Below, piece by piece: positions 1-46,774 of a stretch of DNA of 64,000 bases (position 1 is the first letter of the stretch; each line of letters starts with the position of its first letter). Location: positions 620,001-684,000 of the forward strand of contig VJWM01000025.1 of NCBI GenBank assembly GCA_010909165.1, given 5' to 3'. The DNA is from Anthoceros angustus. Taxonomy: Eukaryota > Plantae > Anthocerotophyta. The position numbers were made by a program, and so were the translations under genes. The notes under the pieces were generated by a model, which was given only the letters and a program-made list of their open reading frames with translations, did no database searches and had not been told where the DNA came from.

Positions 1-14
1 TTCTCTGTACTGCT

Positions 15-3146: not shown

Positions 3147-4626
3147 CTCGCATCTGCCGAAAGATCTGCAAAGCTCTTTCCCCTCTGCTCTGTCGAGCAT
3201 ATGAAGACAGCATTGCATTCCATGAAACTACATTGCACTGAGCAAGTCCATGAAATGCTTCCTCCGCATCAGCAAAGCTCCCACACTTTGCATACATACT
3301 CACCAGTGTGTTGCCAAGAAACGTGTCGGACACAAACCCTCTTCTGACAGCTTCAGCATGTAACTTTCTTCCCACTTTCAAGGCTTCCAGCTTCACTTTC
3401 TCCCCATCCACAAACGTGATTTCCTCCTTTTCTGCCATGCTGCCACATGCTTGAAGGGCACTGACAAACGTCCGTGCATCCGGCTTAACTCCAGCCTGAT
3501 GCATCTCACGAAATGCCCTCATTGCCATTTCCCCATGTCCCTGCTGTGAGTATCCGGCAAGCATCACATTCCATGCCACCACGTCTCGCTGGGACAAGCC
3601 ATCAAACACCTGCCGGGCATCCACTATGCTCCCACACTTGGCGTACATGTCAACCAAACTAATCCCAACAATCCCATCCGAGTCCAGCCCACATGCCACA
3701 ACTTGAGCATGAATCCGCCTACCCTCCTCCAGGTCTTCCAATCTGCTGCATGCCTTGAGTAAGCTGATAGCCCTGCCGTCTTCTTGCATAGCCCTGTAGG
3801 GTTGAAGAGCCTCCTGGCCCATGCCCTGCTGGGAATACCCTGCTATCATGGCATTCCATGTCACCACAACCTTCCGACCAAACCCATTGAACACTCTCTG
3901 AGCATCCTCTAAGCTGCCACACTTCGTATACTGACCAAACTGTTGGCTACGAATGACAGCAGATTCATATCCTCGTTCCCTAAGTTGTGCATGAAGATGC
4001 TTCCCTTCTCCAACGCCAGGTGCTTACACTTGCACACGCCTGCAGGAGACACAAAAGTCACAGAACCAGGTGCTACGATGCCTTCATACTGCATAGCACT
4101 GTGGAGACGAAGGGCCTCATCCCCCATGCCCCGTTGGGAATACCCTCCTATCATGGCATTCCAGGTTATTATATATCTTTGTGACCAAGTCCTTCAAAAA
4201 CTCTCTGCGCATTCTCCAGCTGCCACACGTCCACCAAGCCTGCTTGTCTTCTCCATGTTTTAACATGCGCAGAGATGATGGCAGCCCACGTGAAGGCATC
4301 TGGATTGGACACCAGCTCAAACCCATCCCTCGCGTCTTGCAACCTGCCATGAGAAGCATACATCGCAGGATGTGGAAGCCCAGGAACGTGTTTGACTGGT
4401 ACCCGTTTCTCACAGCGAAAGCATGGACCCGGCTACCCAGAACAAGATCCCTGTTTACCACACATTTCTTCAGCACAGTATAAAGGAGAGATTTTGGAAT
4501 ACGACGGTCTGTCTGCACCATAGGTTCCAGAGACTCGACGGCCTGACTGAGATCAACATTATGACATAGTTTGCTCACGGATTCAGCAGAAATGCCCCCA
4601 TCGTCACGTGCAGGGCAACGACCCAT
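3147..4626 (-). pseudogene. Chimeric PLS-class PPR gene (B 5' + A 3'), disrupted by copia-1 insertion
   Basis: ORFs 4117-4626, 3909-4154 and 3133-3894 give L/S/P motifs (VTWNAMIAGYSQQG, LVDMYAKCGS). Truncated at 3147 by the LTR. Confidence 0.85.
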
Positions 4627-5501
4627 TCCTGCTTGCGCGCATCAGCCCAAGCTGGCTGGTGCAAACTGCTTAACCAGAGGACATCTTGTCACTGCCTATT
4701 CCAGCCGGAACATCCACCTGGACGGGCTGGCTCCCTTACAGAGGTGCTGCAACCACCGAGTCCCACTGCCAGCACTTGTCTCCTTGAAGTCAGGCCAGCA
4801 GCAGATCTTCCTACAGCCCCTCAACCCACAACTTCGTTGGGTGCACATAAGCTGTGGCAACAACGGGTCCCCTTGCCCTCTGCGTGACTCCAACGCCACG
4901 CTCCGGACAACCATGGTTCACAGGAGCACAGGGTGCGCCTGTGGAAGCAGCAGGAGGCTGCCAGGAGTTGTGCATCCTTGCTTGCTTCACAGGATTTCGG
5001 TTGCTGGCAATATTTCAGAATCCGGGAGTTTTCCTTGTTTTCTCACCTACAAGATGGCCTATACCAGACAGGCCCCATTACGGAGAAGGCACATCAGACA
5101 TGATCTCTTGCCATGCTCCATTCGCATTGGCAGTGCACTGGAAACACAAGTTCCTCCATAACACTCCCTGTCCGAGCATCTTCTGCAAACTTGGCAGAGA
5201 ATGATGGTGAAAAAGAATCACATTATGGGTAATGGAAGGCTATTTTTCTACCGGAGTTCAGAGTCCTCGAAGGGCAAGCCCCAAAGGCATGGTGCTTCAA
5301 TACACACCTAACGTGGTCAGAGATGGTGTGAAGCTGCACCGTTGTTACCGTGGAATCCATGACAATGAAACTACATGTCCAAGCTACAGCAACAGTGTCC
5401 TGATGCTAAAGCACAAGCCAAACATGTAGAATATTCGCTAGTGCAATCCCTCCAGGGATAATCTCTGAGAACAAAGGGAAGAACAGAAGGGGTTCATCTC
5501 A

Positions 5502-6470
5502 TCAGTACATGGGCTCCTCAGGATCCATCACACACCCAGGGTCAGGGTCCACCACACATCCAGGGTTAGCCTCCGAGTTCTTAAGAGTTTCATCCACCTT
5601 GCTTTCTTCTTCTGGAAAAGCAACGCTAGCTCGAAGACCTTTTTGTTCGTGATACGCCCTCTTCCAGATCTCTGCCATCCAGTACTTGTGGCGAGCCTTG
5701 GCGCGATGCATCCGAGCTAGATACTTGGCCGTCAAACCCGCAGTGGGAAACTCTGCCTCCAAGTCCGCCAAGATTTGCTCCGCAAGCACTCAAGATTGAA
5801 CCTGGCGTGCGCATGCTGACTGCAGATGCTACCAGAGGACTAGTCCACCATATAAAGGGGTCTCTGTGGATGAATTGAAGATGACCAAATGGTCACCTCC
5901 AACACAAAGGGTCACTGAGTCACGTTCAGTGGGAGGAAGGGCCCTGCCGTCAATGATCATCCACTGGTCGATCAACCTTAACGCTGAGCACTGTGAGATA
6001 TTGTGCAGTGTAGTTTGTGCAGGAGCACCCGGTGTACGTGCAAGCAAGCTTAGCGTCTCCTTCCGCACAAAGTCGCGACCTGAATGAGCCCCTGGGCTGG
6101 GGCCTTGCACCTCACAATTACGCAGAACACACGCATGAGGCCGATCGAGGCCACTATATCCTCAACATGGCCATGATTTTCTCCATACGTTTCTGCCGCC
6201 CACCTCACTTCTGAGCAGGAGGGAAAAGAAGATTTTGAACCTCTAACACGACCTCGAATAGATGTACATAGGTGCAGAGCACAAGCTTGCGCACAGGCTA
6301 ATTCCCGCCGTTGTGATCCGGAAGGAAAGGGTCATACATCTGATGCCAAAGATCAATAAAAAGTCTGCAAGCTTCCGTCCAAAATTTATGGCCAGCCTAG
6401 CGCTCACTATGCATGTGGTCTACGGAAGAAAGCTCGCGAACTGTACTGATACGTGACTTCCTAAACTAGC
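5502..6470 (-). pseudogene. Unidentified decayed ORF (~300 aa when stitched), copy 1
   Basis: Protein-like frames ...AGHKFWTEACRLFIDLWHQMYDPFLPDHNGGN*PVRKLVLCTYVHLFEV... and ...DPFIWWTSPLVASAVVHAHARFNLECLREQILADLEAEF...DPEEPMY, with TAG stops and frameshifts. Family not recognised. Confidence 0.4.
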
Positions 6471-6471
6471 C

Positions 6472-7754
6472 TTAATTCCAGCTGCCGAACTCCAGCCACG
6501 GATTCAGGCAGTGAAGGCTCTGCGTCACAAAACGCTTGTAGGGCCAGGAGGAAGCCACCTCCAAGCCCCGGGTGTTCGTCGCAAATCGACAGCCATTATC
6601 TTATCGAGCCCCTCTCGCTTGATGTATACTTGCGAATCCTGCCCCCACGACCTTGATATCGATGTCCAGGTGGCTCGGGAAACGTCTGCCATGGAAACGA
6701 GGAAGCATGGAAGCGGGCATGGTGTCCAGCACCGTCCAGGCCATGCTCGCGAAATCCATCTCCCAGATCTGCACAACAACTCCTTCCCCAGGACTACGCA
6801 TAAGAACCGGGCCGTGGAAGATGTCCTCACCTAGGACCACGCATAGCAGCCGGTCGCGCACGTTGATGAGGTTGCACTGCGCGATGTGGAAACGGAGAGG
6901 CGTGGACACGGCCATCCATTTCCAGCTGGCCCGCTCCAGGTCGTACGCCAGCAAATTGTAGTTCTCGGTGATGCAGTACAGCACGGACCTCACAAACACC
7001 GTCTGCGCCTGCGATCCCTCACCACGCAGGCTTCTGTCAAACACCTCGTTCAGGGCAAGGCGGTGGTAGTCACACTCCAGCTGCCCACCGCGGAATCGAA
7101 CACGAAGGTGGGCACGGGTCTGCGCATGTCCATGTTATCCATCTTGTTGCGTGTATCTTTGATGGCCACCAGCTTGAAGCAACGCGCCTTCACGTCAACG
7201 AACACGCCCAACACATCCTGGATCCACAGACCACCCGGGAGAGCCGGCAGCGAGGCCCAAGAGCGCGCCAACGGGTTGCCCAAGTGCGGGATGGTGACCA
7301 CGTCCCGCGCCCCTGCGTACGCGCGCACCTTATTGTGGACAGCAGCAGGCCGCCGCCGCCCTTCCCGACCCGCAGCGCCTCCATCATTTCCGGAACAGGC
7401 TGTGAAGCGTGGTGTTGCACCCGTAGCGGGAGTGGGAGTTGGTACCAACGGTTTGATCCAGGGTCGTAGACGCCGGAGGAAGCAGGAGGAGGTGCTGAAG
7501 CCTACTACCAAGAGCAGACAGTCCAGCGCTCCCGCTCGCAATTCCAAGCGCTCCCGCAACAAGGAGGGCGACACGGCGGCCGCATTCCAGGCTCTGCACA
7601 CCGCGCGCGTCCGCAACAAGCTCACCAGTGGCAGCCGAGCCTGAATCATGGTCTCAACGTCTCTAGGCAGCTCCAAGTCGCTGGATACAACGAATTCGTC
7701 ATCTGCATCTGCATCCATCTCGGGCCCTCGCACTCCGCCGTCTGCAATCACCAT
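6472..7754 (-). CDS. F-box protein with kelch/beta-propeller-like C-terminus, copy 1 (intronless, apparent frameshifts in homopolymers)
   Basis: F-box motif ELPRDVETMIQARLPLVSLLRTRAVCRAWN, then YDPGSNRW, NPLARSWASLP, FDSAVGSW, YDLERASW and WEMD repeats. Plausible C-terminus WRWLPP-PYKRFVTQSLHCLNPWLEFGSWN* ends at TAA 6472-6474. Confidence 0.85.
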
Positions 7755-7909
7755 CACCAGGGACCCTCGCTCAGCCTCCGGATCCGCCTGAGGACAACAC
7801 ACATACGCAGACCAACCTCTTAGACACTACCTATTGTGACAGGGTTGTAGGAGATAATACCCACATCACACGACAGTAATTCGATCACGGAATTGATATA
7901 TTGAATCAC

Positions 7910-7917
7910 TATATATA
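7910..7917 (-). promoter_or_regulatory. Putative TATA box of the F-box gene (also present in units 2 and 3)
   Basis: TATATATA ~156 bp upstream of ATG 7754, in an AT-rich stretch. Position only, no functional evidence. Confidence 0.3.
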
Positions 7918-8109
7918 GGCTCTGAATTTGCTATCATCTCGAGGACTATGCATTTAATCTCGATACATAGATCGATGGGCCGATCTATCCTGCTTACAAA
8001 ATTCACTCTCTTATCAATCCCATCCCTTGAGATGATTGAATACATGAGCTGATCATGCTTGTCACGGCGTGTGGTTGGGCTGATAATGTAGTCCATTTGA
8101 TGGGTGCAC

Positions 8110-9550
8110 CAGACTTCATGTGCAAATTAGATCAGAACGACATGAGATGCAGATAGAGAAGGGTAACCTCGCGCAGAGACCACACACGAGGGAGGCCAGC
8201 ACGCCCAGGTGCCCTCCTCGCAGATGGAACGATTCCAAAAGTTGTCGAAAGGTCATCTTCACGGGTCTGTCTGCGATATCTTCAACCAGGGAGTACTTCG
8301 TGTGTCCTTGGCTATGGGCGACAGCACTGATCCCTTCTTCCTCCGGCACTTGGGCTTGCCTGCAGCAGTTGCTGGGTTTTCAGCCTCCTTCATGATGACC
8401 TCTGGTCCAATCACATCAACCTCGCGTCGTTGTACTTTTGTCTTTCTCCGAGTTTCTCCCCTTCATCGATGGGCTCTTCATCTCGGAGCTTCTTGTCTTC
8501 GTCCACCACAGTTAGAATCCGTGTCCCTGGCATGCAGTCAGAGAACACTCCCCACCGTTTCATCCCCAGATGATTTCTGTGCCATCGTAACAAGCTGTTG
8601 GTTGTTCTTGGCAGGTCCTGCATTGGGCTTCTTAGTGTTTTTATTTCCGGTGCCCTGCTGAGGAAACTTTGGGCTTGATCAGTGCGTGTGTCCGGTTTCC
8701 TTGCACTTGGTGCAGGCGCCCTTCACGCAATAGCCTGAAGGAGTGGATGCCCTTGGTGCAAGTAGCTTAAGGCACATCATGGTACAAGTTGTTAAGTACC
8801 AAGTCCCATGACGGAAATCCGTCCTTAGTCGACTTAAATAAAATTCTTCTTCTTCTTCTTCTTAGCCCTTGGATAAAATGCAAGACTACTTTCTTTTGTT
8901 TCTCCCCTCATACCCCAACTTCTCATTTAGGACGCTCGTGCGGTCGATGTAGCTGACTAGAGTCTCATGGTCATCTTAATACAGGTCCAGGAGTTGGTTG
9001 TGACAGTCCCAGAAAAGGTTGGACTCAGAACTTCACCACAAATGCACAACATATTCCTGACCAGTCAACCTGGTTAGAACCCTTCAACTTCTCGCACCAT
9101 GCCTCAGCCCTTTCCTCTCAAGGAAGTGGGAAAGTACTTGAGGTACGTCTTCAGAGCTACCATGATCCTGACCTTCATAGCATTTTTGAAGCTCAACAGA
9201 TGTTCATCAGGATCATCAGCAGGAGTTCCAAAGAAAGCAGGAAAAGCAAGGAGCTCAAAGCACTTTTTATCTGATGACCTCGACATCCTATCTTTTCTAA
9301 GACTTGTCTAACTATACTCTCTATCTATTGGTGAGACCGTCTACCTTTGCCCACGAGCTCTGCGTACATTAGCCTGGTGGAGAGTCAACCACAGCGCTTG
9401 GTAAGCCAGGGGCATATGCTCAAAGCCAAGGGGCATATGCTCAAAGCCAAAAGGTACGAGAAGCACTTGTCGTGGCACTGGTTTCTGCACTGGCCTGATA
9501 CGGATTGGCTGATGTTTCCTAGCTCATCCAGACTGCTTTGACTCCTGTCT
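8110..9550 (-). mobile_element. Degenerate Ty3/gypsy gag remnant, copy 1
   Basis: DDPDEHLLSFKNA...FPTSLRGK is gag-like. YSLVEDIADRPVKMTFRQLLES resembles ITFGQLLKDNQ in the gypsy element at 62906-63151. Also (CTT)6 and a 20-bp GCATATGCTCAAAGCCAAGG doublet. Confidence 0.65.
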
Positions 9551-11677
9551 CATTCTCACAAAATCATAATACCACGGGTGATGCAGGATGAACCCCTCCG
9601 GGAGTTGGGGAGGGTACGTACATTGCTTCACGTCCCAAGCCTCAGCAACGAGTCCCACCGGGAGTGCCAAGCTGTTGGATATCGGGTAGGACTTGTAGGC
9701 CAGCCTGCTCTCGGCTGCCTAGCAGAAGTTATCGTTGTGGACCTAGCATTCGCGATGACACTGCGGCTAGGACCTACGCTCTTCCTCAAGATTGCTGGGA
9801 CGACTTGAAACTCTACACTCCTGCACTCAAGATGACATGTAGGAGTGGTCAAATACTGTAAATGACGGATGGAATGTTGATAGATAGGGCAAGGAAAGGA
9901 GGGCCTGTGCCCCGCTGCTTGACCTTCAGCAAGTGTGATCTGCAGGCTGGTGGTGAAGACAAATACACAAAACCGACGTTAGCACAACTAAAACGAGGAT
10001 TCCACAGCTGCAACGCATACTCAGTGCAACACTCAAACACAGGATGCCTTGCCTCGCAGGACTGACAAGAAGAGAGACAGGCCAGCAATTGCCTTCTGCT
10101 TTAGTCATGGCCAAACGGCCTACATATTTATTTGGTGGCCTTGCTACCAAGATCCAAGCCTACAGCTAGGCTGGTAATCGCAACCTCCACACAAAGTTGG
10201 ACTGACCCCTATCGCTTCCGACTCTCATGGCCAACCCCTATGTTTGGAGAGGGTTTCAGGTTGGGTGGGCAGGCAGGGCGTGAGTAGCTTCACGCGGTTG
10301 CTCCTACAGTTACGATGAATTATTTCAGTTGATACATGGTGCTCACCCTGCTAGGGGATCTTTGTCTTTTGGAGACAGTGACGGTTCATGCAAGCAGAGA
10401 GGGTTTGAAGACATCTGATCTCCCCGCATAAACTTAAGACTTGTCTTGGTCAATACTTGAGTCAGCACTTGGGAGAAGATTTCATGCATTTGGATGGCCA
10501 GGAGCCTTTCAAAGACTCACAGGAGTCCGCTTGTGCAGTCCTGCATTTGATCAGCGGTGCCCTGAATCGGATATCAGCTGCAATTGCATCTCGGCAGTCT
10601 TTCAGCTCTGGCTTCAATGTCTGAAAGTGGATTCTGTTGTAGGACAAGAATGTAATGTGGGCATGTGGGAAGAATCCAAATCAGTTCAAGGAAACAATCC
10701 AGTGCACTTTGAATGTCGCCGCCAAATCATGTCCCTCTCCCGATATCCGTTTACTCAGATTTGAATCTCCACTACATTTTGCACCGGCAGCAAGAACAAT
10801 ACGGTGGCTCCCGATTTGCGGTTGTGAGAGCTGATGAGCAGTTTGTTTGCGCCCATCAGCCAGTCGCTGTTTATGTATGGAGATCATCGGACTGCGATGG
10901 CTGCTCACCCATATCAACCACAGTCCACACCGAAACTACGGGAAGCGACGCCATTGGCATCAGTGTTCCCTAAGGCATCTACTCTGAAGATTTTCATGAA
11001 GCTGAAGCACGGACGAAATCATAGCACTTCAAAACCAGGACAATGTGGCATATGTGGCTTGATCATACCCTCTTCCGCCATGGAATTTCCTGGTTCTGGA
11101 ATTGTGAGCTGTCAATCTTTGACGTCTGATGTTTTCGCTTTGCGCAGCACACATTTAAATAAGGAGGAACTTTGGAACGCAGCAGTTTGGGTAGCGGCGA
11201 GGAGGCACCTTCCAAGCAGTCAAAAGAGAGCGAGGGGTGGGAAATTGTTTTGTTCAGGCTTGCATTGCAATGGGCACGCAGATTTGTTCTCCCATGATTC
11301 TATCACGGCACCTCTCCAGACACAGACAAGGAAAGGCAGTTGCCCATCACTACGTCATCCAGATCCCTTCGTCAGCGAGTGCAGCGCGCAGGCCTTCAGA
11401 AGACAAGCAAAGAGAACATGGTCAGCCAGAGTCAGCTCCTCCAGACAGGCGTCATGCTTGTCTTCTAATAAAGGTGATAGCGGTAATACGAATTCCCAAA
11501 CCCCGGTGACGTAGTTTCGCTCTGAAGTGCCGCTGATCGAGAGCAGGACGGCCATCAGCGCACGGCAGGTGGGACTTCTTAGCTCTTAGAGTAGCTCAGA
11601 CTCTTGACAATTTTTTGCAAGATCCTCGAGGATGGAGTTGGTTTGGAAGTTTGCGGAAACCTCCATGGAACCTGCTG

Positions 11678-14600
11678 CTACTGCCAGAGCTTGGGCGCTC
11701 CATGGAACCTGCTGCTACTGCCTTGGGCGGGTGGGGGCGTTTCTGCTGAATGCGTGACACCCTTATCTCGCCCTGATGCAGCTGAAGTCATCCTAGCTGT
11801 AGTTAGCTTTGCGCCGACATCTTCCAATATCTCATACAAAATGGCTGTTTGTTGGTGTTTGCAGTCATCCGCCAAAATACGTGCACCTGCTTGTCATGCT
11901 CGATCCAGCTCTGGCCAGGCTTCTTCCAGGAAACTGCCCTTTGCCTCAACTCATCCACCTTTCTCGCACAATCCAACATGCCAGCATCTAGATAAATGTT
12001 TGACATGAGGACATAGGCTGCTGCGTGTTCTGGATCTTCACCTACTGCTTCAGCGAAGGCCCGCTCTCCCAGTGAAACATTACCATGTTTTCGGCAGGCG
12101 CTCAGCAGGCACAACCAGACTGGCAAACCAGGCTGAATTGGCATCTGGGAGAGCAGCATTTCAGCTTTACTGAAGAGACCTGCTCGACCGACGAGGTCCA
12201 TTACACAAGCGTAATGTTCCGTGTCTGCAGAGATGCTGTATTCCCTGGTCATGGCTCCGAAGTACTCCAGTCCCCTATCGACTAGTCCAGCATGGCTGCA
12301 AGCAGACAGGAGGCCCAGGAAGGTGACTCTATCTGGTTTCAAGCCAGATTGTAACATGTGGCCATAGCACTGGATGCTCGTGTTGCAATCGCCCAGCCGG
12401 GCATAGCCTGCGAGAAGGGCATTCCATGAGATGACGTCAGGGCGAGATAGGAGTCGAAGACACGTTGGGCATCCACCATGCTCCCACACTTGCTGTACGC
12501 ATGAATGAGGCTGGTGGCAACAGGAAGACGGTACTCCAATCCATTGTCGAGAATGGCCTGGTGGGTCTGGACGCACATGTCTAATGCCCTGTGCTGCTGC
12601 ACGCTTGGAGGACTGACACAAAAGTAGCTTCCTGTGGCTTCATTCCCTCTGCTTGCATCTGGGCATACAGTTGCAAAGCCTTTCCTCCTTGCTCCTGGGC
12701 ATACGCTGCAATCATGACAGTCCACGACACAAGATCACGCTGAGACATCCTGTCAAACACCTGCTCTGCGTCTGTGATGCTCCCACACTTGGCATACATG
12801 TACACCAGAGTGCTGGCGACAAACATGTCTAAATCCAAATCCAGTCTTGCAGCTTCAGCGTGTATGTCTCTTCCCAGTTCAAGGTAATCCAGCTTCACAC
12901 TCTGCCCATCCTCAGATGACACCTTCTCCTTTTCTGCAGCGACTCCACAAGCATGGAGAGCACTGGCCAAGGTTCGCGCATCCGGCTTCACGCCCTCCTT
13001 CTGCATCTGTTTAAACACCTGGAAGGCCTTTCCTCCTGCGCCCTGCACAGCATACGCTGCGATCATGGCAGTCCATGACACCACACCTCGCCTGGGCAAT
13101 CGGTTGAAGACAAGTTCTGTGTCCTGAATGCTCCCACACTTTGCATACATACTAAGCAAAGTGTTGCAAACATAGATGTCAGAATCAAGCCCCATTCTGT
13201 AGCTCCTGCATGCAACTCCCTTCCCTCTCGCAGGGATGCCACTTTGACATCTTGCCCATGCACCAAGGTGCTTTTCTCTTTGCTGCAAGGCAGCCGCATG
13301 CATGAAGCGCACTTACAAATGTCTGCGCATCGGGCCTGCAGCCCTCCCTTTGCATCTGTCTGTAGACCTGCAAAGCTTTGTCTCCTTGGTCCTCCTCGGC
13401 ATATCCTCCTATCATGGCATTCCATGCCACCACATCACGCTTGTGCAAACTTTTAAACACCTCCTCAGCATCGTTGATGCTCCCGCACTTTGCATACATA
13501 CTAACCAGAATGCTACCAACAAACATGTTGGATTCAAAACCCCTTCCCGAACTCCAGCATGGATTTCCTTCCCCTTCTGCAAGGACTGTACTTTTACATT
13601 GCGGCTGTTCAGAGCTGCACTCTCCTCCTTTTCTGCAATGCTGCCACACGCTCGGAGGGCACTTACAAATGTTCGAGCATTTGGACTTATCCCCGTCTCT
13701 CGCATCTGCCGAAAGATCTGCAAAGCTCTTTCCCTCTGCTCTGTCGAGCATATGAAGACAGCATTGCATTCCATGAAACTACATTGCACTGAGCAAGTCC
13801 ATCAAATGCTTCCTCCGCATCAGCAAAGCTCCCACACTTTGCATACATACTCACCAGTGTGTTGCCAAGAAACTTGTCGGACACAAACCCTCTTCTGACA
13901 GCTTCAGCATGTAACTTTCTTCCCACTTTCAAGGCTTCCAGCTTCACTTTCTCCCCATCCACAAACGTGATTTCCTCCTTTTCTGCCATGCTGCCACATG
14001 CTTGAAGGGCACTGACAAACGTCCGTGCATCCGGCTTCACTCCAGCCTGATGCATCTCACGAAATGCCCTCATTGCCATTTCCCCATGTCCCTGCTGTGA
14101 GTATCCGGCAAGCATCACATTCCATGCCACCACGTCTCGCTGGGACAAGCCATCAAACACCTGCCGGGCATCCACTATGCTCCCACACTTGGCGTACATG
14201 TCAACCAAACTAATCCCAACAATCCCATCCGAGTCCAGCCCACATGCCACAACTTGAGCATGAATCCGCCTACCCTCCTCCAGGTCTTCCAATCTGCTGC
14301 ATGCCTTGAGTAAGCTGACAGCCCTGCCGTCTTCTTGCATACCCTGTAGGGTTGAAGAGCCTCCTGGCCCATGCCCTGCTGGGAATACCCTGCTATCATG
14401 GCATTCCATGTCACCACAACCTTCCGACCAAACCCATTGAACACTCTCTGGGCATCCTCTAAGCTGCCACACTTCGTATACTGACCAAACTGTTGGCTAC
14501 GAATGACAGCAGATTCATATCCTCGTTCCCTAAGTTGTGCATGAAGATGCTTCCCTACTCCAACGCCAGGTGCTTACACTTGCACACGCCTGCAGGAGAC

Positions 14601-15171
14601 ACAAAAGTCACAGAACCAGGTGCTACGATGCCTTCATACTGCATAGCACTGTGGAGACGAAGGGCCTCATCCCCATGCCCCGTTGGGAATACCCTCCTAT
14701 CATGGCATTCCAGGTTACTATATCTTTGTGACCAATTCCTTCAAAACTCTCTGCGCATTCTCCAGCTGCCACATGTCCACCAAGCCTGCTTGTCTTCTCC
14801 ATGTTTTAACATGCGCAGAGATGATGGCAGCCCACGTGAAGGCATCTGGATTGGACACCAGCTCAAACCCATCCTCGCGTCTTGCAACCTGCCATGAGAA
14901 GCATACATCGCAGGATGTGGAAGCCCAGGAACGTGTTTGACTGGTACCCGTTTCTCACAGCGAAAGCATGGACCCGGCTACCCAGAACAAGATCCCTGTT
15001 TACCACACATTTCTTCAGCACAGTATAAAGGAGAGATTTTGGAATACGACGGTCTGTCTGCACCATAGGTTCCAGAGACTCGACGGCCTGACTGAGATCA
15101 ACATTATGACATAGTTTGCTCACGGATTCAGCAGAAATGCCCCCATCGTCACGTGCAGGGCAACGACCCAT
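11678..15171 (-). CDS. Chimeric PLS-class PPR protein (B N-terminal motifs + A motifs, P2-L2-S2-E1-E2-E+, no DYW); putative organellar RNA-editing specificity factor; intactness uncertain
   Basis: Stitched ORFs 14863-15171, 13687-14472, 13185-13769, 12581-13312, 11803-12621 and 11678-11875 give P-L(L)-S triplets, E domain AAAYVLMSNIY, PG box WKKPGQSWIE, and E+ HVFLADDCKHQQTAILYEIL. Confidence 0.85.
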
Positions 15172-17010: not shown

Positions 17011-17014
17011 AGCC

Positions 17015-18298: not shown

Positions 18299-18659
18299 CA
18301 CCAGGGACCCTCGCTCAGCCTCCGGATCCGCCTGAGGACAACACACATACGCAGACCAACCTCTTAGACACTACCTATTGTGACAGGGTTCTAGGAGATA
18401 ATACCCACATCACACGACAGTAATTCGATCACGGAATTGATATATTGAATCACTATATATAGGCTCTGAATTTGCTATCATCTCGAGGACTATGCATTTA
18501 ATCTCGATACATAGATCGATGGGCCGATCTATCCCTGCTTACAAAATTCACTCTCTTATCAATCCCATCCCTTGAGATGATTGAATACATGAGCTGATCA
18601 TGCTTGTCACGGCGTGTGGTTGGGCTGATAATGTAGTCCATTTGATGGGTGCACCAGAC

Positions 18660-27525: not shown

Positions 27526-27528
27526 GCC

Positions 27529-28813: not shown

Positions 28814-29169
28814 CACCAGGGACCCTCGCTCAGCCTCCGGATCCGCCTGAGGACAACACACATACGCAGACCAACCTCTTAGACACTACCTATTGTGACA
28901 GGGTTCTAGGAGATAATACCCACATCACACGACAGTAATTCGATCACGGAATTGATATATTGAATCACTATATATAGGCTCTGAATTTGCTATCATCTCG
29001 AGGACTATGCATTTAATCTCGATACATAGATCGATGGGCCGATCTATCCCTGCTTACAAAATTCACTCTCTTATCAATCCCATCCCTTGAGATGATTGAA
29101 TACATGAGCTGATCATGCTTGTCACGGCGTGTGGTTGGGCTGATAATGTAGTCCATTTGATGGGTGCAC

Positions 29170-30950
29170 CAGACTTCATGTGCAAATTAGATCAGAACGA
29201 CATGAGATGCAGATAGAGAAGGGTAACCTCGCGCAGAGACCACACACGAGGGAGGCCAGCACGCCCAGGTGCCCTCCTCGCAGATGGAACGATTCCAAAA
29301 GTTGTCGAAAGGTCATCTTCACGGGTCTGTCTGCGATATCTTCAACCAGGAGTACTTCGGTGTGTCCTTGGCTATGGGCGACAGCACTGATCCCTTCTTC
29401 CTCCGGCACTTGGGCTTGCCTGCAGCAGTTGCTGGGTTTTCAGCCTCCTTCATGATGACCTCTGGTCCAATCACATCAACCTCGCGTCGTTGTACTTTTG
29501 TCTTTCTCCGAGTTTCTCCCCTTCATCGATGGGCTCTTCATCTCGAGCTTCTTGTCTTCGTCCACCAGTTAGAATCCGTGTCCCTGGCATGCAGTCAGAG
29601 AACACTCCCTTACCGTTTCATCCCCAGATGATTTCTGTGCCATCGTAACAAGCTGTTGGTTGTTCTTGGCAGGTCCTGCATTGGGCTTCTTAGTGTTTTT
29701 ATTTCCGGTGCCTGGAAACTTTGGGCTTGATCAGTGCGTGTGTCCGGTTTCCTTGCACTTGGTGCAGGCGCCTTCACGCAATAGCCTGAAGGAGTGGATG
29801 CCCTTGGTGCAAGTAGCTTAAAACATCATGGTACAAGTTGTTAAGTACCAAGTCCCATGACGGAAATCCGTCCTTAGTCGACTTAAATAAAATTCTTCTT
29901 CTTCTTCTTCTTAGCCCTTGGATAAAATGCAAGACTACTTTCTTTTGTTTCTCCCCTCATACCCCAACTTCTCATTTAGGACGCTCGTGCGGTCGATGTA
30001 GCTGACTAGAGTCTCATGGTCATCTTAATACAGGTCCAGGAGTTGGTTGTGACAGTAGAAAAGGTTGGACTCAGAACTTCACCACAAATGCACAACATAT
30101 TCTGACCAGTCAACCTGGTTAGAACCCTTCAACTTCTGCACCATGCCTCAGCCCTTTCCTCTCAAGGAAGTGGGAAAGTACTTGAGGTACGTCAGAGCTA
30201 CCATGATCCTGACCTTCATAGCATTTTTGAAGCTCAACAGATGTTCATCAGGATCATCAGCAGGAGTTCCAAAAGCAGGAAAAGCAAGGAGCTCAAAGCA
30301 CTTTTGTCCGATGACCTCGACATCCTATCTTTTCTAAGACTTGTCTAACTATACTCTCTATCTATTGGTGAGACTGCCGTCTACCTTTGCCCACGAGCTC
30401 TGCGTACATTAGCCTGGTGGAGAGTCAACCACAGCGCTTGGTAAGCCAGGGCATATGCTCAAAGCCAAGGGCATATGCTCAAAGCCTCGATGACCTCGAC
30501 ATCCTATCTTTTCTAAGACTTGTCTAACTATACTCTCTATCTATTGGTGAGACCGTCTACCTTTGCCCACGAGCTCTGCGTACATTAGCACAGTGGAGAG
30601 TCAACCACGGTAGCTTGTAGCCAGGGCATATGCTCAAAGCCAAGGGCATATGCTCAAAGCCAACGTACATTAGCACGGTGGAGAGTCAACCACGGTAGCT
30701 TGGTAAGCCAGGGCATATGCTCAAAGCCAAGGGCATATGCTCAAAGCCAGCGTACATTAGCCTGGTGGAGAGTCAACCACGGTGGTAAGCCAGGGCATAT
30801 GCTCAAAGCCAAGGGGCATATGCTCTCAAAGCCAAGGGGCATATGCTCAAAGCCAAAAGGTGCGAGAAGCACTTGTTATGGTTGGTTTACGCATAGGCAC
30901 GTCTGGATTGGTGATGTTTCCTAGCTCATCGGACCGCTTTGACTCGTGTC
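29170..30950 (-). mobile_element. Degenerate gypsy gag remnant, copy 3, with expanded repeats
   Basis: Copy of 8110-9550 with an expansion at 30400-30860. Confidence 0.65.
30403..30860. repeat. Nested minisatellite: ~85-bp unit containing 20-bp GCATATGCTCAAAGCCAAGG repeats
   Basis: CGTACATTAGC at 30403, 30579, 30664 and 30751. Nine GCATATGCTC copies versus two in units 1 and 2. Confidence 0.9.
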
Positions 30951-30953
30951 TCA

Positions 30954-33900
30954 TGTTGGGAAAAGAGCTGAGCCTTTATAGAGAGGAACACAACACTCCC
31001 ATACAATATGGGTTATATGCACTAGGCACACTAGATACTAGCACACAAGCACACAAGAACTCTTGCACACCTTACAAGTAGGTGGGCTTGGCCTTATATA
31101 GTCCTAGCCTTGAATCCTACTGGTCACTTGACCTTGAATCCTATTGGTTACTTGACCTTGCCCTTTACTTTTGGACTTTCTTTAGGACTTTCTAGAAGAT
31201 ACTTTCTAGAAGATGCATGACTTTCAAGTATGTTATTTTAGGGCACTCTTCATAACCTGCTTTTAGGGCACTCTTCATAACATATTTTGATATGTTGTAA
31301 TAAATTACTTCTAACACTCCCACTCAACATATCAAAATTATTCCCTTAGGCCTAGCATCTTGCTAAACCTAGCATGTTTTTCTAAAGTCAAGGCTTTGGT
31401 CAAAATATCTGCCGGCATGTCTCTGTTGGACAATACTCTAGCTTTACCTCTTTTGACTTTACCTTCTCTCTTATAAAGTGATGTTTCACTTGATGTGCTT
31501 GGTTCTAGCATGAAAAGTTGCATTCTTGGCTAAGAAGATGCAACCTTGATTGTCGTTGAAGATTGTTGTTGCTTCCTTGCTTGAATCCCATCTCCTCTAG
31601 CAAGTTCAACCATATCGCCTCCATGACCGCAGAGCATGTTGCCATATATTACCGGAGGATAGAGCCACGATGGGTTGTCTCCTACTATTCCATGAAATGG
31701 CTCCCCATTCGGCATAAGCATATCCGTAGACTTGCGACTATCAACATCTCCGCCCGAATCACAATATCCTACCACTCGGACTTCCTGATGCTGTTGATAC
31801 ACCAAATTCCAATGCTTTGTACCACTCAAGTACCTCATTATCCTCTTCACGGCTTGAAAGCTGTTGTGGTTAGCCATAAATTGACTTGCAACTCCAATTG
31901 CCTCTGCAATGTCAGGCCTTGTCCCTGTAGATAAATAGGTGAGGCATCCAACAGCACACTGATAGAGAGTTTTATCTACCTTCTCCTTCTCTTCTTGATT
32001 GTAGGACTCATCTCCTTTGAGAGCTTCTCATTAAGCACCATTGGTGTCTTCAGCTTGCACTCTTGCATTCCAAAGCGCTTGAGGACATTCTCAACATATG
32101 TCCTTTGGCTCAAAGAGATCTTCTTGTTAGCCCTGTCTCTCATTACTTCTATCCCTAGAAAGTAATGAAGTTCACCTAGATCCCTCATATCAAAACTATC
32201 ATTAAGACTCTTCTTCGTACTCTCTAAGAGCTCCAAATCATTGCAAACAAGGATTAGATCATCCACATAGACAGCAATGATCATCATGGACTCTCCCACT
32301 CTCTTCACATAGATGTTCCAATCTCCATTGGTTTTCTTGAAACCTCTAGCTTGGAAGAACTTGTCAATCTTAACATACCAGGTAAGTGCAGTTGCTTAAG
32401 ACCATAGTGCCTTTAGCAATTTACATACCTCACTTTCTACAGCACTTCATACCCTTGGTTGGTTCATGTAGATCTCTTCTTCCAAATCTCCATTGAGAAG
32501 CAGTTTGGACATCCATGTGATGTATCTCCGGATCCATGGTAGTGCTATTGCTAAGAGTATACGAATGGATGTTATCTTAGCAGGGAGAAAGTGTCGGTGT
32601 AGTCAATACCGCACTTGTGTATATCCCTTCCCCACCAGCCTTGCTTTGTATCGCTCTATGCTCCCATCGTTGTGTGATCTTGAACACCCATTTGGATCCT
32701 ATGCACTTCCTTCCTTGGGGTAGAGGAGTGATTTCCCAAGTCTTGTTCTTGATAAGTGAGTTATACTCACTATCAGGCTTCTTTCCACTCCTTCGCCTTT
32801 GGCCCTTCCAAGGCTTCCTTCAAGCTTTGCGGCTCATCAACATCGCCAACATAGCCTCTTCGTGCCATGCATTCATGGACTCCAAAATTTTCTCGAAGGT
32901 TTCCATCGCCTTGATGATCTCACGATGGGTCGGCGCTCCTCTTGGATTCTTGATCTCGCTCCTCTTCATCATCCTCGATATCCGGGGCTTCTCCACCTTC
33001 TATATCACCTTGTGGTAGAGGTTGCTCATGCTCAGGAACAGGTTGAGCATGCTCAAGAGTAGGTTGCTCAAGAACCAAGTCTTGTGCTTCTTCACGCTCC
33101 TTCAACTCCTTGATGACAACTTGCGTTGCTCCCACTCCTTTGTTAGGTTCCACAACCTCATGAAAAACAACATCCTCGAAAATGATTTTCTTGGTTGTAG
33201 GGTTGTATAATCTATACCCCTTTACCTCATTGAATACCCAAGCATGATGCCTTTGGATGCCTTTAGGATCCCACTTGGTTCGGTTTTGCTTTGGAACATG
33301 AGCATAAACCTCGAACCAAAGATCCTAAAATGACTCACGTTAGGTTTGACACGGACCATGCCTCCTCGGTCATTCCAGTCTGACCTTGGTTGGAACTCTA
33401 TTCAAAACATGAGTTCTTGTAGCAGCCTCTCCCAAAACGTACCTCCAACCCACTTTGATGGAGCATGCGCAGCCGCCTCCACTAGGCTCCTTAGCTTGCG
33501 CTCCGCCACTCCATTTTGCTCCGGTGTGTGAGGAATTGTTAGTTGCCTCCGAATGCCATGCTCCTTGCAAAAGCTTTTGAATTGAGAAGAGATGTATTCT
33601 CCTCCATTGTCACTCCTAGTCTTGAGGCATTCTCCACTTTCGTTCTCCACCAAGGCTTTCCACTCCTTGAATGTCTTGAACACTTGGACTTCTCCTTCAA
33701 AAGGTATGTCCAACTCCTCCTTGTGAAGTCATCCACAAACACTAGAATGTAGCGGGCTCCTCCATGGGTAGGGTTCTTCATTGGTCCACACATCGGTGTG
33801 TACAAGTTCAACGCCTTTGCTCACGCGCCCAATCCTTGGGAACTTGGTTGGTGAAGCTTTCCCATCATGCACCCTTGGCACAATCGCTCACCAATCTCTT

Positions 33901-35889
33901 TCAAATCCAAGCGGTCACCATTTGTTGATTCTTCATCATCTTGATGTTGTCCACTCCAGTGTGCCCCAAGCGTTGATGCCACAAATCTATTGACCTAGTG
34001 CTCTTAGGCGAGCTTGACACAAATGTGCAAGCTTGTTGATCACCTATGGAAGCACACAACTTATAGAGATTGCCTTCCCGAACACCTCGAGCTATCACCT
34101 TGACATTAGGTGATTCTGGTTGCTCGGGTTGGATGCGACATCCTCGAGTTGAAAACAATCTCATTCCCAGGGTCAATGATTCTTGCTACTGAAAGAAGAT
34201 TCTTCGCAAGACCAGGCACATGGTGTACATCCTTGATTGTACCTTTGGATGGTCCTCCAGGGAGTTGAACTTTAATCACACCTCTTCCTTTGATCTCGTG
34301 TGACCTATTGTCTCCAAGCGCCACTTTATGCCCCGCCGGCATTTCTTCATAGCTTGAGAACCAAGGCCGATTGTAGGTGAAGTGTTGAGATGCTCAGTCG
34401 AGGTACAAACTCTCATCCTTCTTTGATGGGAGTTGTCGTACTCTTTCTACGGTTGAGGCAATGAAAGATGTTCTTCCTTCTCACTCACTTGATTGGCTTG
34501 TGACTCCTTTCCTTCTTCTTCAAGTCAACCTTGTCCTACAATCCTTGGCATAGTGATTAGGCTTTTGCAATAATGGCAAGTACCCACACCTTTTCTTCAC
34601 CTTTTCTCCTTGATCCTTCTTGAGTTGGCTTGTGAAGTCTTCCCACGTGTTGTTCCCTTCTTTGAGAAGAGCACCGAGTCTCCATTCTCTTCTTTCTTGA
34701 AGGAATTCTCTAGCTCCTCTTGTAGGAGCAACCCAACCACCTCATCCAACATTGGTGGTTTGTCGCTTGGACGCATCACTACCATAGTTCTGAAGGCCAA
34801 CACAAATTGCTTGTATGCGGATGGTAAGCTACTTAGCAACACCACGATAACCTTTCTTTCAGAAGGTTTGACGTCCGCCGCCTTCATTTGATCCACCAAG
34901 TTCTTCAACTTGTTGGCGTGTTGTTGAATGGTGTCACCCTCGACCATCTTGAAGTTGGCGAATTGTTGCTCCCACTCCTTGATCCTTCTTCTTCTCATTT
35001 GTTTCTTGCATCTCACATTGAGGATCGCCACATCTCATTCACCAAGCTCTTCTTCTACTGTTGCAGTCGTCACGCCGCTTTTGATGTTGCACACTCACTC
35101 AATTGAGAGAGTATGTCATCGGACACATTGAGGAGAATCGTTGAATTGTCCATCTTTCTCGTGTCCACTTGGTGGGTGTTTCTCGAGGCCATTGTCGACA
35201 AACTTCCATAGTCCTCGGTCGATGAGAAGCATCTTCACTTCAACTTCCACAATGTGAAGTTGTGCCTCAAACTTCTCCGCTAGACGTGTCTCCATGCTTG
35301 CTGACGCCATGCTAGTTTCCCTACAATTGATCTTGAAGACCAAAGCGCCTCACTCACATGCACTACAAGAATAGTATCAAGACCTTTCCAATTGCACACA
35401 AGTTCTCACAAGCTCTAGGCTAAGAACTATGCAATAGGACTTGACTCAAATAACAATGCAAGGGGCATTCTATAAGGCTCTTGAACATGGCTTTGATACC
35501 ATGTTAGGAAAAGAGCTGAGCCTTTATAGAGAGGGAACACAACACTCCCATACAATATGGGTTATATGCACTAGGCACACTAGAAACTAGCACACAAGCA
35601 CACAAGAACTCTTGCACACACCACGCCTGACAAGTAGGTGGGCTTGGCCTTATATAGTCCTAGCCTTGGATCCTACTGGTCACTTGACCTTGAATCCTAT
35701 TGGTTACTTGACCTTGCCCTTTACTTTTGGACTTTCTAGAAGATACTTTCTAGAAGATACTTTCTAGAAGATACTTTCTAGAAGATGCATGACTTTCAAG
35801 TATGTTATTTTTAGGGCACTCTTCATAACCTGCTTTTAGGGCACTCTTCATAACATATTTTGATATGTTGTAATAAATTACTTCTAACA
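30954..35889 (-). mobile_element. Full-length Ty1/copia retrotransposon (copia-3, 4,936 bp), frameshifted gag-pol
   Basis: LTRs 30954-31316 and 35502-35889 (TG...CA). PBS GCTTTGATACCA at 35490-35501. PPT complement CTCCCACTC at 31317. TSD TCTCA at 30949-30953 and 35890-35894. Integrase ([17 protein letters not shown]), RT (YVDDL) and RNase H (ADILTKAL) motifs. Confidence 0.95.
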
Positions 35890-37918
35890 TCTCATTCTCA
35901 CAAAATCATAATACCACGGATGATGCAGGATGAACCCCTCCGGGAGTTGGGGAGGGTACGTACATTGCTTCACGTCCCAAGCCTCAGCAACGAGTCCCAC
36001 CGGGAGTGCCAAGCTGTTGGATGTCAGGTAGGACTTGTAGGCCAGCCTGCTCTCAGGCTGCCTAGCAGAAGTTATCGTTGTGGACCTAGCATTCGCGATG
36101 ACACTGCGGCTAGGACCTACGCTCTTCCTCAAGATTGCTGGGACGACTTGAAACTCTACACTCCTGCACTCAAGATGACATGTAGGAGTGGTCAATACTG
36201 TAAATGACGGATGGAATGTTGATAGATAGGGCAAGGAAAGGAGGGCCTGTGCCCCGCTGCTTGACCTTCAGCAAGTGTGATCTGCAGGCTGGTGGTGAAG
36301 ACAAATACACGAAAACCGACGTTAGCACAACTAAAACGAGGATTCCACAGCTGCAACGCATACTCAGTGCAACACTCAAACACAGGATGCCTTGCCTCGC
36401 AGGACTGACAAGAAGAGAGACAGGCCAGCAATTGCCTTCTGCTTTTAGTCATGGCCAAACGGCCTACATTTTTATTTGGTGGCCTTGCTGCAAGATCCAA
36501 GCCTACAGCTAGGCTGGTAATCGCAACCTCCACACAAAGTTGGACTGACCCCTATCGCTTCCGACTCTCATGGCCAACCCCTATGTTTGGAGAGGGTTTC
36601 AGGTTGGGTGGGCAGGCAGGGCGTGAGTAGCTTCACGCGGTTGCTCCTACAGTTACGATGAATTATTTCAGTTGATACATGGTGCTCACCCTGCTAGGGG
36701 ATCTTTGTCTTTGGAGACAGTGACGGTTCATGCAAGCAGAGAGGGTTTGAAGACATCTGATCTCCCGCATAAACTTAAGACTTGTCTTGGTCAATACTTG
36801 AGTCAGCACTTGGGAGAAGATTTCATGCATTTGGATGGCCAGGAGCCTTTCAAAGACTCACAGGAGTCCGCTTGTGCAGTCCTGCATTTGATCAGCGGTG
36901 CCCTGAATCGGATATCAGCTGCAATTGCATCTCGGCAGTCTTTCAGCTCTGGCTTCAATGTCTGAAAGTGGATTCTGTTGTAGGACAAGAATGTAATGTG
37001 GGCATGTGGGAAGAATCCAAATCAGTTCAAGGAAACAATCCAGTGCACTTTGAATGTCGCCGCCAAATCATGTCCCTCTCCCGATATCCGTTTACTCAGA
37101 TTTGAATCTCCACTACATTTTGCACCGGCAGCAAGAACAATACGGTGGCTCCCGATTTGCGGTTGTGAGAGCTGATGAGCAGTTTGTTTGCGCCCATCAG
37201 CCAGTCGCTGTTTATGTATGGAGATCATCGGACTGCGATGGCTGCTCACCCATATCAACCACAGTCCACACCGAAACTACGGGAAGCGACGCCATTGGCA
37301 TCAGTGTTCCCTAAGGCATCTACTCTGAAGATTTCATGAAGCTGAAGCACGGACGAAATCCTGTACTTCAAAACCAGGACAATGTGGCATATGTGGCTTG
37401 ATCATACCCTCTTCCGCCATGGAATTTCCTGGTTCTGGAATTGTGAGCTGTCAATCTTTGACGTCTGATGTTTTCGCTTTGCGCACACATTTAAATAAGG
37501 AGGAACTTTGGAACGCAGCAGTTTGGGTAGCGGCGAGGAGGCACCTTCCAAGCAGTCAAAGAGAGCGAGGGGTGGGAAATTGTTTTGTTCAGGCTTGCAT
37601 TGCAATGGGCACGCAGATTTGTTCTCCCATGATTCTATCATGCACCTCTCCAGACACAGACAAGGAAGGCAGTTGCCCATCACTACGTCATCCAGATCCC
37701 TTCGTCAGCGAGTGCAGCGCGCAGGCCTTCAGAAGACAAGCAAAGAGAACATGGTCAGCCAGAGTCAGCTCCTCCAGACAGGCGTCATGCTTGTCTTCTA
37801 ATAAAGGTGATAGCGGCCATACGAATTCACAAACCCCGGTGACGTAGTTTCGCTCTGAAGTGCCGCTGATCGAGAGCAGGACGGCCATCAGCGCACGGCA
37901 GGTGGGACTTCTTAGCTC

Positions 37919-40900
37919 TTAGAGCAGCTCAGACTCTTGACAATTTTTGCAAGATCCTCGAGGATGGAGTTGGTTTGGAAGTTTGCGGAAACCTCCATGG
38001 AACCTGCTACTGCCAGAGCTTGGGCGCTCCATGGAACCTGCTGCTACTGCCTTGGGCGGGTGGGGGCGTTTCTGCTGAATGCGTGACACCCTTATCTCAC
38101 TTGATGCAGCTGAAGTCATCCTAGCTGTAGTTAGCTTTGCGCCGACATCTTCCAATATCTCATACAAAATGGCTGTTTGTTGGTGTTTGCAGTCATCCGC
38201 CAAAATACGTGCACCTGCTTGTCATGCTCGATCCAGCTCTGGCCAGGCTTCTTCCAGGAAACTGCCCTTTGCCTCAACTCATCCACCTTTCTCGCACAAT
38301 CCAACATGCCAGCATCTAGATAAATGTTTGACATGAGGACATAGGCTGCTGCGTGTTCTGGATCTTCACCTACTGCTTCAGCGAAGGCCCGCTCTCCCAG
38401 TGAAACATTACCATGTTTTCGGCAGGCGCTCAGCAGGCACAACCAGACTGGCAAACCAGGCTGAATTGGCATCTGCGAGAGCAGCATTTCAGCTTTACTG
38501 AAGAGACCTGCTCGACCGACGAGGTCCATTATACAAGCGTAATGTTCCGTGTCTGCAGCGATGCTGTATTCCCTGGTCATGGCTCCGAAGTACTCCAGTC
38601 CTCTATCGACTAGTCCAGCATGGCTGCAAGCAGACAGGAGGCCCAGGAAGGTGACTCTATCTGGTTTCAAGCCAGATTGTAACATGTAGCACAGTAGCAC
38701 TGGATGCTCGTGTTGCAATCGCCCAGCCGGGCATAGCCTGCGAAGGGCATTCCATGAGATGACGTCAGGGCGAGATAGGAGTCAAAGACACGTTGGGCAT
38801 CCACCATGCTCCCACACTTGCTGTACGCATGAATGAGGCTGGTGGCAACAGGAAGACGGTACTCCAATCCATTGTCGAGAATGGCCTGGTGGGTCTGGAC
38901 GCACATGTCTAATGCCCTGTGCTGCTGCACGCTTGGAGTACTGACACAAAAGTAACTATAATAGCTTGTTCCTCTTGCTTGCATCTGGGCATACAGTTGC
39001 AAAGCCTTTCCTCCTTGCTCCTGGGCATACGCTGCAATCATGACAGTCCACGACACAAGATCACGCTGAGACATCCTGTCAGGCACCTGCTCTGCGTCTG
39101 TGATATCCACACTTGGCATACATGTACACCAGAGTGCTGGCGACAAACATGTCTAAATCCAATCCAGTCTTGCAGCTTCAGCGTGTATGTCTCTTCCCAG
39201 TTCAAGGTAATCCAGCTTCTCACTCTGCCCATCCTCAGATGACACCTTCTCCTTTTCTGCAGCGACTCCACAAGCATGGAGAGCACTGGCCAAGGTTCGC
39301 GCATCCGGCTTCACGCCCTCCTTCTGCATCTGTTTAAACACCTGGAAGGCCTTTCCTCCTGCGCCCTGCACACAGCATACGCTGCAGTACTGTGCAGTCC
39401 ATGACACCACACCTCGCCTGGGCAATCGGTTGAAGACAAGTTCTGTGTCTAGATATCCCACACTTTGCATACATACTAAGCAAAGTGTTGCAAACATAGA
39501 TGTCAGAATCAAGCCCCCATTCTGTAGCTCCTGCATGCAATTCCCTTCCCTCTCGCAGGGATGCCACTTTGACATCTTACATGCACCAAGGTGCTTTTCT
39601 CTTTGCTGCAAGGCAGCCGCATGCATGAAGCGCACTTACAAATGTCTGCGCATCGGGCCTGCAGCCCTCCCTTTGCATCTGTCTGTAGACCTGCAAAGCT
39701 TTGTCTCCTTGGTCCTCCTCGGCATATCCTCCTATCATGGCATTCCATGCCACCACATCACGCTTGTGCAAACTTTTAAACACCTCCTCAGCATCGTTGA
39801 TGCTCCCGCACTTGCATACATACTAACCAGAATGCTACCAACAAACATGTTGGATTCAAAACCCCTTCCCGAACTCCAGCATGGATTTCCTTCCCCTTCT
39901 GCAAGGACTGTACTTTTACATTGCGGCTGTTCAGAGCTGCACTCTCCTCCTTTCTGCAATGCTGCCACACGCTCGGAGGGCACTTACAAATGTTCGAGCA
40001 TTTGGACTTATCCCCGTCTCTCGCATCTGCCGAAAGATCTGCAAAGCTCTTTCCCTCTGCTCTATCGAGCATATGAAGACAGCATTGCATTCCATGAAAC
40101 TACATTGCGCTGAGCAAGTCCATCAAATGCTTCCTCCGCATCAGCAAAGCTCCCACACTTTGCATACATACTCACCAGTGTGTTGCCAAGAAACGTGTCG
40201 GACACAAACCTCTTCTGACAGCTTCAGCATGTAACTTTCTTCCCACTTTCAAGGCTTCCAGCTTCACTTTCTCTACATCCACAAACGTGATTTCCTCCTT
40301 TTCTGCCATGCTGCCACATGCTTGAAGGGCACTGACAAACGTCCGTGCATCCGGCTTAACTCCAGCCTGATGCATCTCACGAAATGCCCTCATTGCCATT
40401 TCCCATGTCCCTGCTGTGAGTATCCTGCAAGCATCACATTCCATGCCACCACGTCTCGCTGGGACAAGCCATCAAACACCTGCCGGGCATCCACTATGCT
40501 CCCACACTTGGCGTACATGTCAACCAAACTAATCCCAACAATCCCATCCGAGTCCAGCCCACGTGCCACAACTTGAGCATGAATCCGCCTACCCTCCTCC
40601 AGGTCTTCCAATCTGCTGCATGCCTTGAGTAAGCTGACAAACGTAAAACGGTCTGGCTGCAAACCTTCCTGTCGCATCCTTCCATCGCACGACAAGGCCA
40701 CCCGAGACAATCCAGCATTGCTATACCCTGAAATGATTGCTCTCCAAGAAGCAACTGATGGGTGCGACAATCTCTGCAACAGTTGAACCCCGTCTGCAAG
40801 GCCCCCACGACTGACCAGTGTGGACACCAGCAGGTCGCCCAACTGCCTGTGGGACTCCAACCCAAGTTTTGTCGCATGAGCATAGACCTGCTTGGCCTCG

Positions 40901-46696: not shown

Positions 46697-46774
46697 GGCC
46701 TACTCTAGGCAGGCCCCACGACGTTCATGCAAAAGGCAAATCAGATAGACGTGATCTCTTCCCATGCTCCATGC

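Follow-up and report, generated by a model that had tools for sequence, protein, structure and literature searches.

We examined a 64,000-nucleotide stretch of the nuclear genome of the hornwort Anthoceros angustus (contig VJWM01000025.1 of assembly GCA_010909165.1, forward-strand positions 620,001 to 684,000; hereafter the window, whose first letter is position 1). In this hornwort-like region, which is rich in transposons and in genes for pentatricopeptide repeat (PPR) proteins, a unit of ≈10.5 kb is arranged head to tail in at least four units, one of which is cut, and a chimeric PPR gene lies at each internal joint. Self-megablast of the window matched 3147-19958 with 13699-30486 (99.0% identity), 3147-9448 with 24208-30486 (98.8%), 9548-14320 and 20058-24829 each with 35890-40639 (98.1%), and 3147-3767 with 40020-40637 (98.4%). 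With 3147-3769 named segment 'a' (a0 to a3 being its successive copies) and 3770-13698 named segment 'b', the array reads L-a-b-a-b-a-b'-a-R, and a repeat finder gave periods that agree with this layout. Alignment of the four 'a' ends placed the internal joints at 3769/3770, 14320/14321, and 24829/24830 and the right end at 40639/40640. By self-comparison and alignment, unit 1 occupies 3770-14320 (10,551 nt) and unit 2 occupies 14321-24829 (10,509 nt). Unit 3 (24830-40639; 15,810 nt) includes an insertion at 30487-35889 (5.4 kb) and lacks ≈100 nt corresponding to 9449-9547 of unit 1. Unit 0, the cut fourth unit, is represented by its segment 'a' (3147-3769), which is 98.4-99% identical to 13699-14320, 24208-24829, and 40020-40639. 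Array sequence is thus visible from 3147. Because it is a retrotransposon cutting unit 0, and not unique flanking sequence, that sits at 3146/3147, further array sequence is expected beyond the left edge of the window, where the remainder of unit 0 would begin with a 5-nt target duplication (GCGAG).

PPR-like coding sequence was found on the minus strand only at ≈3147-4626, 11677-15171, 22107-25684, and 37918-41031, together with a short fragment at 45757-46253. At every internal joint, the 5' part of one minus-strand gene, B, is fused to the body of another, A, with the reading frame locally kept, and the junction peptide MQEDGRA[V/I]SLLKAC occurs at 3748-3789, 14299-14340, and 24808-24849. 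The B head contributes a start codon (MGRCPARD), a leader architecture typical of the subfamily, and ≈8 motifs, two of which are partial. The A body contributes 20 PLS motifs followed by E1, E2, the PG box, and a short E+ tail. The resulting chimeric genes are G0 (3147-4626, joint 3769/3770), which is cut by the retrotransposon at 3147 and retains the A-type motifs of a0 as its 3' remainder, G1 (11677-15171, joint 14320/14321), and G2 (22107-25684, joint 24829/24830). The rightmost copy, native gene A (G3, 37918-41031), keeps its own head (40640-41031), consisting of a short leader and three motifs, and has the peptide QPDRFTFVSLLKAC at its boundary at 40639/40640. The locus therefore has the form of a tandem-duplication chimera, in which an identical internal joint recurs at each unit boundary and fuses two genes of shared orientation; native A stands at the right outer end, and the left array end lies beyond the window, unit 0 being interrupted at 3146/3147.

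Much of this structure had been proposed in a preliminary description made from the letters of the window, and it was recovered here by other means. Self-megablast (98.1-99.0% identity) and the repeat finder bear out the 10.5-kb tandem array, alignment places the joints and the right end at exactly the positions given, and our motif counts agree that ≈8 B motifs replace three of A ahead of the 20 A motifs and the E1, E2, and E+ regions. The B-head/A-body fusion at every internal joint was confirmed by the junction peptides, and the native status of A at the right end by its own head, collinear with relatives. The proposed span of 3770-40639 stands at its right end but not at its left, where the array is already visible at 3147; the accompanying view that the left array end falls outside the window is consistent with a retrotransposon, and not unique flank, at 3146/3147.

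The proteins encoded at these loci have the architecture of PLS-class factors. Tandem P-L-S triplets were matched by the Pfam PPR, PPR_2, and PPR_1 models (E down to 1.9e-42), and after P2-L2-S2 the E1/E2 region was matched by E_motif (PF20431, E=6.5e-7) and followed by a PG box, KKPGQSWIEH..VHVF, at 11875-11925, 22385-22435, and 38203-38253 (tblastn). In four PLS triplets in a row, the L motif is lengthened by a 16-residue insert of the form AC..AEKEE...DG..VK...L..G..IH, placed between its two helices. Such long L motifs lie at 24418-24510, 24068-24160, and 23370-23462 in G2, with equivalents in other units (for example 13909-14001, 13559-13651, 12860-12952, 40229-40321, 39183-39275, and 3358-3450), and the insert is also present in 67 of the 150 nearest full-length representatives. 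No DYW deaminase core (HxE ... CxxC with a C-terminal DYW) was detected, either as a PF14432 match or as a tblastn match past the PG box. We rejected this absence as a sign of decay and take the missing DYW to be a family trait that fits the E+ subgroup, because the nearest full-length relatives likewise end ≈30-45 residues after the PG box. The visible N-termini of the PPR copies are short and acidic, and no targeting peptide was evident in them.

The sequence at the joint bears on how the array was founded. Beside the breakpoint, the B side and the native A side have 48-50% DNA identity, and the longest word common to both flanks within 300 nt is 8 nt. The joint is 18 nt (six codons) shorter than the native A sequence and has ≈1 nt of microhomology, so that the chimera reads MQEDGRA/VSLLKAC where native A reads MRQEGLQPDRFTF/VSLLKAC. 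Clusters of rice RFL genes, which encode P-class PPR proteins, evolve by unequal crossing-over and recombination, and their chimeras have been attributed to homologous recombination of highly similar paralogues (PMC5075784). By contrast, no high-identity tract shared by the two parents was found at the joint in A. angustus. The founding joint is best read as a non-homologous end join and not as a crossover inside a shared tract, because identity across the flanks is 48-50%, no common word exceeds 8 nt, and the joint is 18 nt out of register. On this evidence, the earlier proposal of homologous exchange between neighboring paralogues was not upheld. The reading frame and the order of motifs, P then L in the P-L-S series, are kept across the joint.

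No PPR copy is an uninterrupted open reading frame (ORF) as assembled. Frame maps made by tblastn with distant references were too coarse, since matches ran through stops; per-segment blastp and a chained tblastn against closer relatives were used instead. These gave ≈10 frame changes in G1, 7-8 in G2, which is the least broken copy and has no in-frame nonsense codon, at least 9 in native A, which also carries a CAG-to-TAG nonsense codon at 40064, and 3 in the short G0, all in its B part. Between units, 61 private 1-nt indels were counted against 87 private substitutions, and 52 of the 61 fall in runs of at least two identical bases; real divergence yields far fewer indels per substitution. 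The shared PPR breaks that we inspected are mostly 1-nt losses in short runs, such as TTTT where TTTTT keeps VHVF-LADDC in frame. Thus, most of the single-base breaks look like homopolymer noise of the assembly.

A gene amplified along with each unit provided a measure of this noise. An F-box and beta-propeller gene, identified by Pfam matches and by comparison of its three copies, lies on the minus strand at 6601-7718 in unit 1, 17144-18263 in unit 2, and 27658-28778 in unit 3. All of its breaks are 1-nt indels confined to one or two units, with just one deletion in the unit 3 copy, and a mosaic of alleles across the copies restores an open frame, suggesting that this gene was probably intact in the ancestral unit. 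Its breaks give a noise level of about one per kb, and frameshift-based pseudogene calls inside repeats of this assembly are unreliable. The same procedure, in which the most favorable of the copies' alleles is taken wherever they vary, gave no open frame for the PPR gene, and several PPR breaks must therefore be common to all copies. Some lesions are not easily explained as single-base noise. In the B head these are a 4-nt (TA)2 loss and a motif of hybrid P/S type; the others are the shortened motif at the junction, the copia element that splits G0, and the nonsense codon in native A. The comparison of native A with the chimeras offers only ≈18 usable sites, roughly 11 non-synonymous to 7 synonymous.

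We consider that the chimeras are probably not working editing factors, because a copia element splits one of them, the junction motif lacks six residues, and several breaks are common to all copies. The preliminary description had proposed instead that recombination between neighboring PPR paralogues both amplified the block and produced a functional PLS editing factor with a new upstream RNA recognition sequence. This alternative is favored by the in-frame replacement of A's first three motifs by the B head in P-L-S order, by the start codon that B brings with it and the conservation of the B 5' flank in a second B-like copy, by breaks in G1 and G2 that mostly resemble homopolymer noise and include no nonsense codons, and by relatives that are themselves E+ proteins lacking DYW. 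It has to contend with a joint that contains no homology tract, a junction motif six residues short, a hybrid P/S motif and a 4-nt loss in the B part of all copies, and an ORF that no mosaic of observed alleles restores; furthermore, copia insertion and a nonsense codon have put one chimera and native A, respectively, out of action, no targeting peptide is evident, and no orthologue was found in the searches described below. We regard it as unlikely, and with every copy frame-broken as assembled, its claim of a new specificity was not sustained. The parts of the question can be graded separately from the sequence: the real genome may, though this is somewhat doubtful, have an open frame in G1 or G2; that one of the two is an expressed, functional factor is improbable; and we would give little credence to the view that their breaks are noise throughout and that the B-head/A-body fusion is an open, expressed E+ PLS-PPR gene in several copies.

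The differences among units argue that the array is not a product of assembly. Segment a1 is the same as a2, from which a0 departs by 4 substitutions and a3 by 8. Between units 1 and 2, we counted 2 substitutions over the 4.8 kb of the right half and ≈24 over the 6.3 kb of the left half. Private substitutions in units 1, 2, and 3 number 17, 7, and 5 in the left part and 2, 0, and 56 in the right part, making the edge unit the most diverged. Such a mosaic with a most-diverged edge unit is what exchange between units would produce. We also weighed whether the array, or its copy number, might be an artefact created by the assembler from fewer real units. The region is noisy, with an indel-to-substitution ratio near 1, and hardly any differences separate a1 from a2 or the right half of unit 1 from that of unit 2, so that those two units could be one. 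Noise does not produce the structural markers private to units, however, which are two different copia elements, a 28-nt indel near 9227, a 9-nt substitution cluster at 7480-7491, and growth of an 87-nt repeat, and these markers speak for units that really differ in sequence, as against a loop introduced by the assembler. Moreover, segment 'a' precedes all three B heads, so at least one a/b joint must exist, and the units become more diverged towards the edge, as they do in real arrays. An artefact of this kind is therefore quite improbable.

The polarity of the event was judged by collinearity with distant full-length relatives, in place of an orthologous locus. No orthologue emerged when a 375-aa ORF was run in a word-index protein search (best identity 47%) or when the junction ORF was scanned against all 1.84 billion representatives (best 49%). 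Residues 33-226 of native A aligned without gaps to residues 1-194 of relative P0132 (56% identity), and the head and body of native A were likewise gap-free against the N-terminal 194-206 residues of P0132, P0150, P0195, P0160, and P0141. By contrast, the chimera required a 6-residue gap exactly at MQEDG/RAVSLL against P0130 and P0195. The combination of A's own head with the A body is thus taken to be ancestral and the chimera derived, as had been proposed before, because A is collinear with its relatives where the chimera is gapped, and because a tandem duplication leaves both outer junctions ancestral and makes only the internal one new. The reverse polarity, in which the B+A form is ancestral and the right-end head (40640-41031) is a derived fusion, could draw on a later rearrangement at the right end, in which case the array end alone cannot polarize the event, and on the nonsense codon and lack of a visible presequence in native A, but it conflicts with the gap-free alignment of A to five full-length relatives and with the newness of internal junctions alone, and it is very improbable.

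Taken together, these results make it likely, in our view, that the locus is a real tandem segmental duplication, founded by a non-homologous B/A join and amplified later, whose chimeras probably do not work. In this history, a single non-homologous end-to-end join would have duplicated a segment reaching from inside PPR gene B to inside PPR gene A. The join would have made one new minus-strand gene, consisting of the B 5' flank, start codon, and ≈8 motifs followed by the 20 PLS motifs, E1, E2, and E+ tail of A. Unequal crossing-over or conversion among 10.5-kb units would then, as we infer, have expanded the two-unit array to at least four, each time copying the chimera and the F-box/beta-propeller gene, and two copia elements would later have inserted into two different units.

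Several observations weigh against this history or parts of it. Preservation of both frame and motif order at the joint has a chance of ≈1 in 30 for random breakpoints, and hints that selection, or homology-guided repair with a small deletion, may have been involved. The motifs of G1 and G2 are canonical, and ≈1,100 codons contain no nonsense codon, a pattern more in keeping with a young, intact gene blurred by assembly noise than with an old pseudogene. The window does not reach native gene B, expected on this model at the left end of the array. Copy number and indels are those of the assembly. Lastly, the long terminal repeats (LTRs) of the copia element in unit 3 differ by 13 substitutions in 413 nt (≈3%), compared with 0.04-1.2% between units; this excess suggests conversion between units after the insertion, or noise.

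Further PPR remnants occur to the right of the array. A minus-strand B-like fragment (45757-46253) and a conserved non-coding stretch upstream of it (46299-46772) lie 5 kb to the right of native A. The upstream stretch is ≈74-80% identical to 4690-5121, and ≈600 nt of B's first motifs are absent. We read this feature, 45757-46772, as an older paralogue of the B head and the trace of an older duplication. A leader exon upstream of B was considered from the comparison of 4690-5121 with 46299-46772 and was rejected; the indels are not multiples of three, indicating that the stretch is non-coding. Small PPR-like fragments are also present on the plus strand just upstream of native A, at 41338-41478 and 41810-42283, and PPR debris litters the region.

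The retrotransposon that cuts unit 0 is a copia-like LTR element on the minus strand, seen at 1-3146, with its 5' LTR at 2940-3146 (207 nt, TG..CA) and its 3' LTR outside the window. Read on the minus strand from 3146, the LTR begins with TGTTG and ends with CACA, and it is followed from 2939 by TGGTATCAGAGCC, which we take to be the classic copia primer-binding site, complementary to initiator tRNA-Met. An ORF at 1491-2288, downstream on the LTR strand, gave a weak copia gag match (E=0.04) that is below the Pfam cut-off. Within the same element, a direct repeat of 1 kb (15-1013 versus 1108-2074, 91% identical) may reflect either a tandem duplication within it or the nesting of another element.

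A Ty1/copia element on the minus strand, private to unit 3, occupies 30952-35912. Its LTRs (30952-31338 and 35500-35912) are 90.6% identical, and it contains gag, rve (integrase), and RVT_2 domains and a primer site of the tRNA-Met type. The 5.4 kb at 30487-35889 that replaces ≈100 nt in this unit is partly growth of the 87-nt repeat, the rest being copia. Units 1 and 2 have about one copy of this repeat (near 9380-9450 in unit 1), and unit 3 has several in tandem at 30309-30835, where the extra copies (30488-30835) adjoin the copia. In the right flank of the array, we observed another copia on the minus strand with gag and RVT_2 matches (47895-51127), a 2.1-kb tandem duplication that is 90% identical (51387-55533), and a repeat of ≈600 nt encoding ORFs rich in lysine, arginine, and glutamate (60078-61824).

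Chimeric genes at the breakpoints of tandem duplications are well documented and have been surveyed in Drosophila (PMC4069613, PMC5460883). As in those cases, the segment described here starts in one gene and ends in another, the internal joint combines one gene's 5' part with the other's 3' part, both in one orientation, and in the Drosophila type the parental genes stay at the outer ends. Unlike the Drosophila chimeras, both parents here belong to one modular repeat family, so that a block of RNA-reading motifs was swapped and unrelated exons were not shuffled, and the unit was amplified further, to at least four copies. The locus resembles the rice RFL clusters in its clustered PPR genes and chimeric structures, and there too replacement of motif blocks has been proposed to alter RNA recognition (PMC5075784). 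In contrast to the P-class RFL genes, those described here are candidate factors of the PLS-class E+ type.

PPR expansion in hornworts has occurred partly by tandem duplication (PMC7027989, PMC13386178), and E+ proteins are reported to be enriched in these plants (PMC13386178). The genes of the array share the layout of the hornwort 'long L motif' PLS E+ subfamily, which has P1-L1-S1 triplets, P2-L2-S2, E1, E2, a PG box, and a short E+ tail without a deaminase core. They differ from members of that subfamily in being frame-broken as assembled and in having exchanged heads, and their best relatives are at most 49-59% identical. The locus is thus a further case of a known type of event, distinct in its PLS-class E+ genes, its non-homologous founding joint, and its amplified chimera.

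As it stands, the array offers a clear example, though an ordinary one, of a tandem-duplication chimera, set in a PPR cluster that is decaying and rich in transposons. Hornwort PPR editing factors number in the thousands, and their new specificities are mostly explained by point changes in motifs after duplication of whole genes. This locus shows, base by base, another route, in which one pair of breakpoints in two PLS genes exchanges eight motifs for three. For an open frame, the 20 motifs that both have would point the chimera and native A to one site-proximal sequence. Should any copy turn out to be both intact and expressed, the locus would provide a dated and testable example of block swap changing specificity in the PLS class. 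If the breaks are noise and the fusion is open and expressed, its upstream recognition block would have been replaced in one non-homologous step before amplification, and the very young candidate editing factor that resulted would amount to a natural experiment on how PLS specificity changes.

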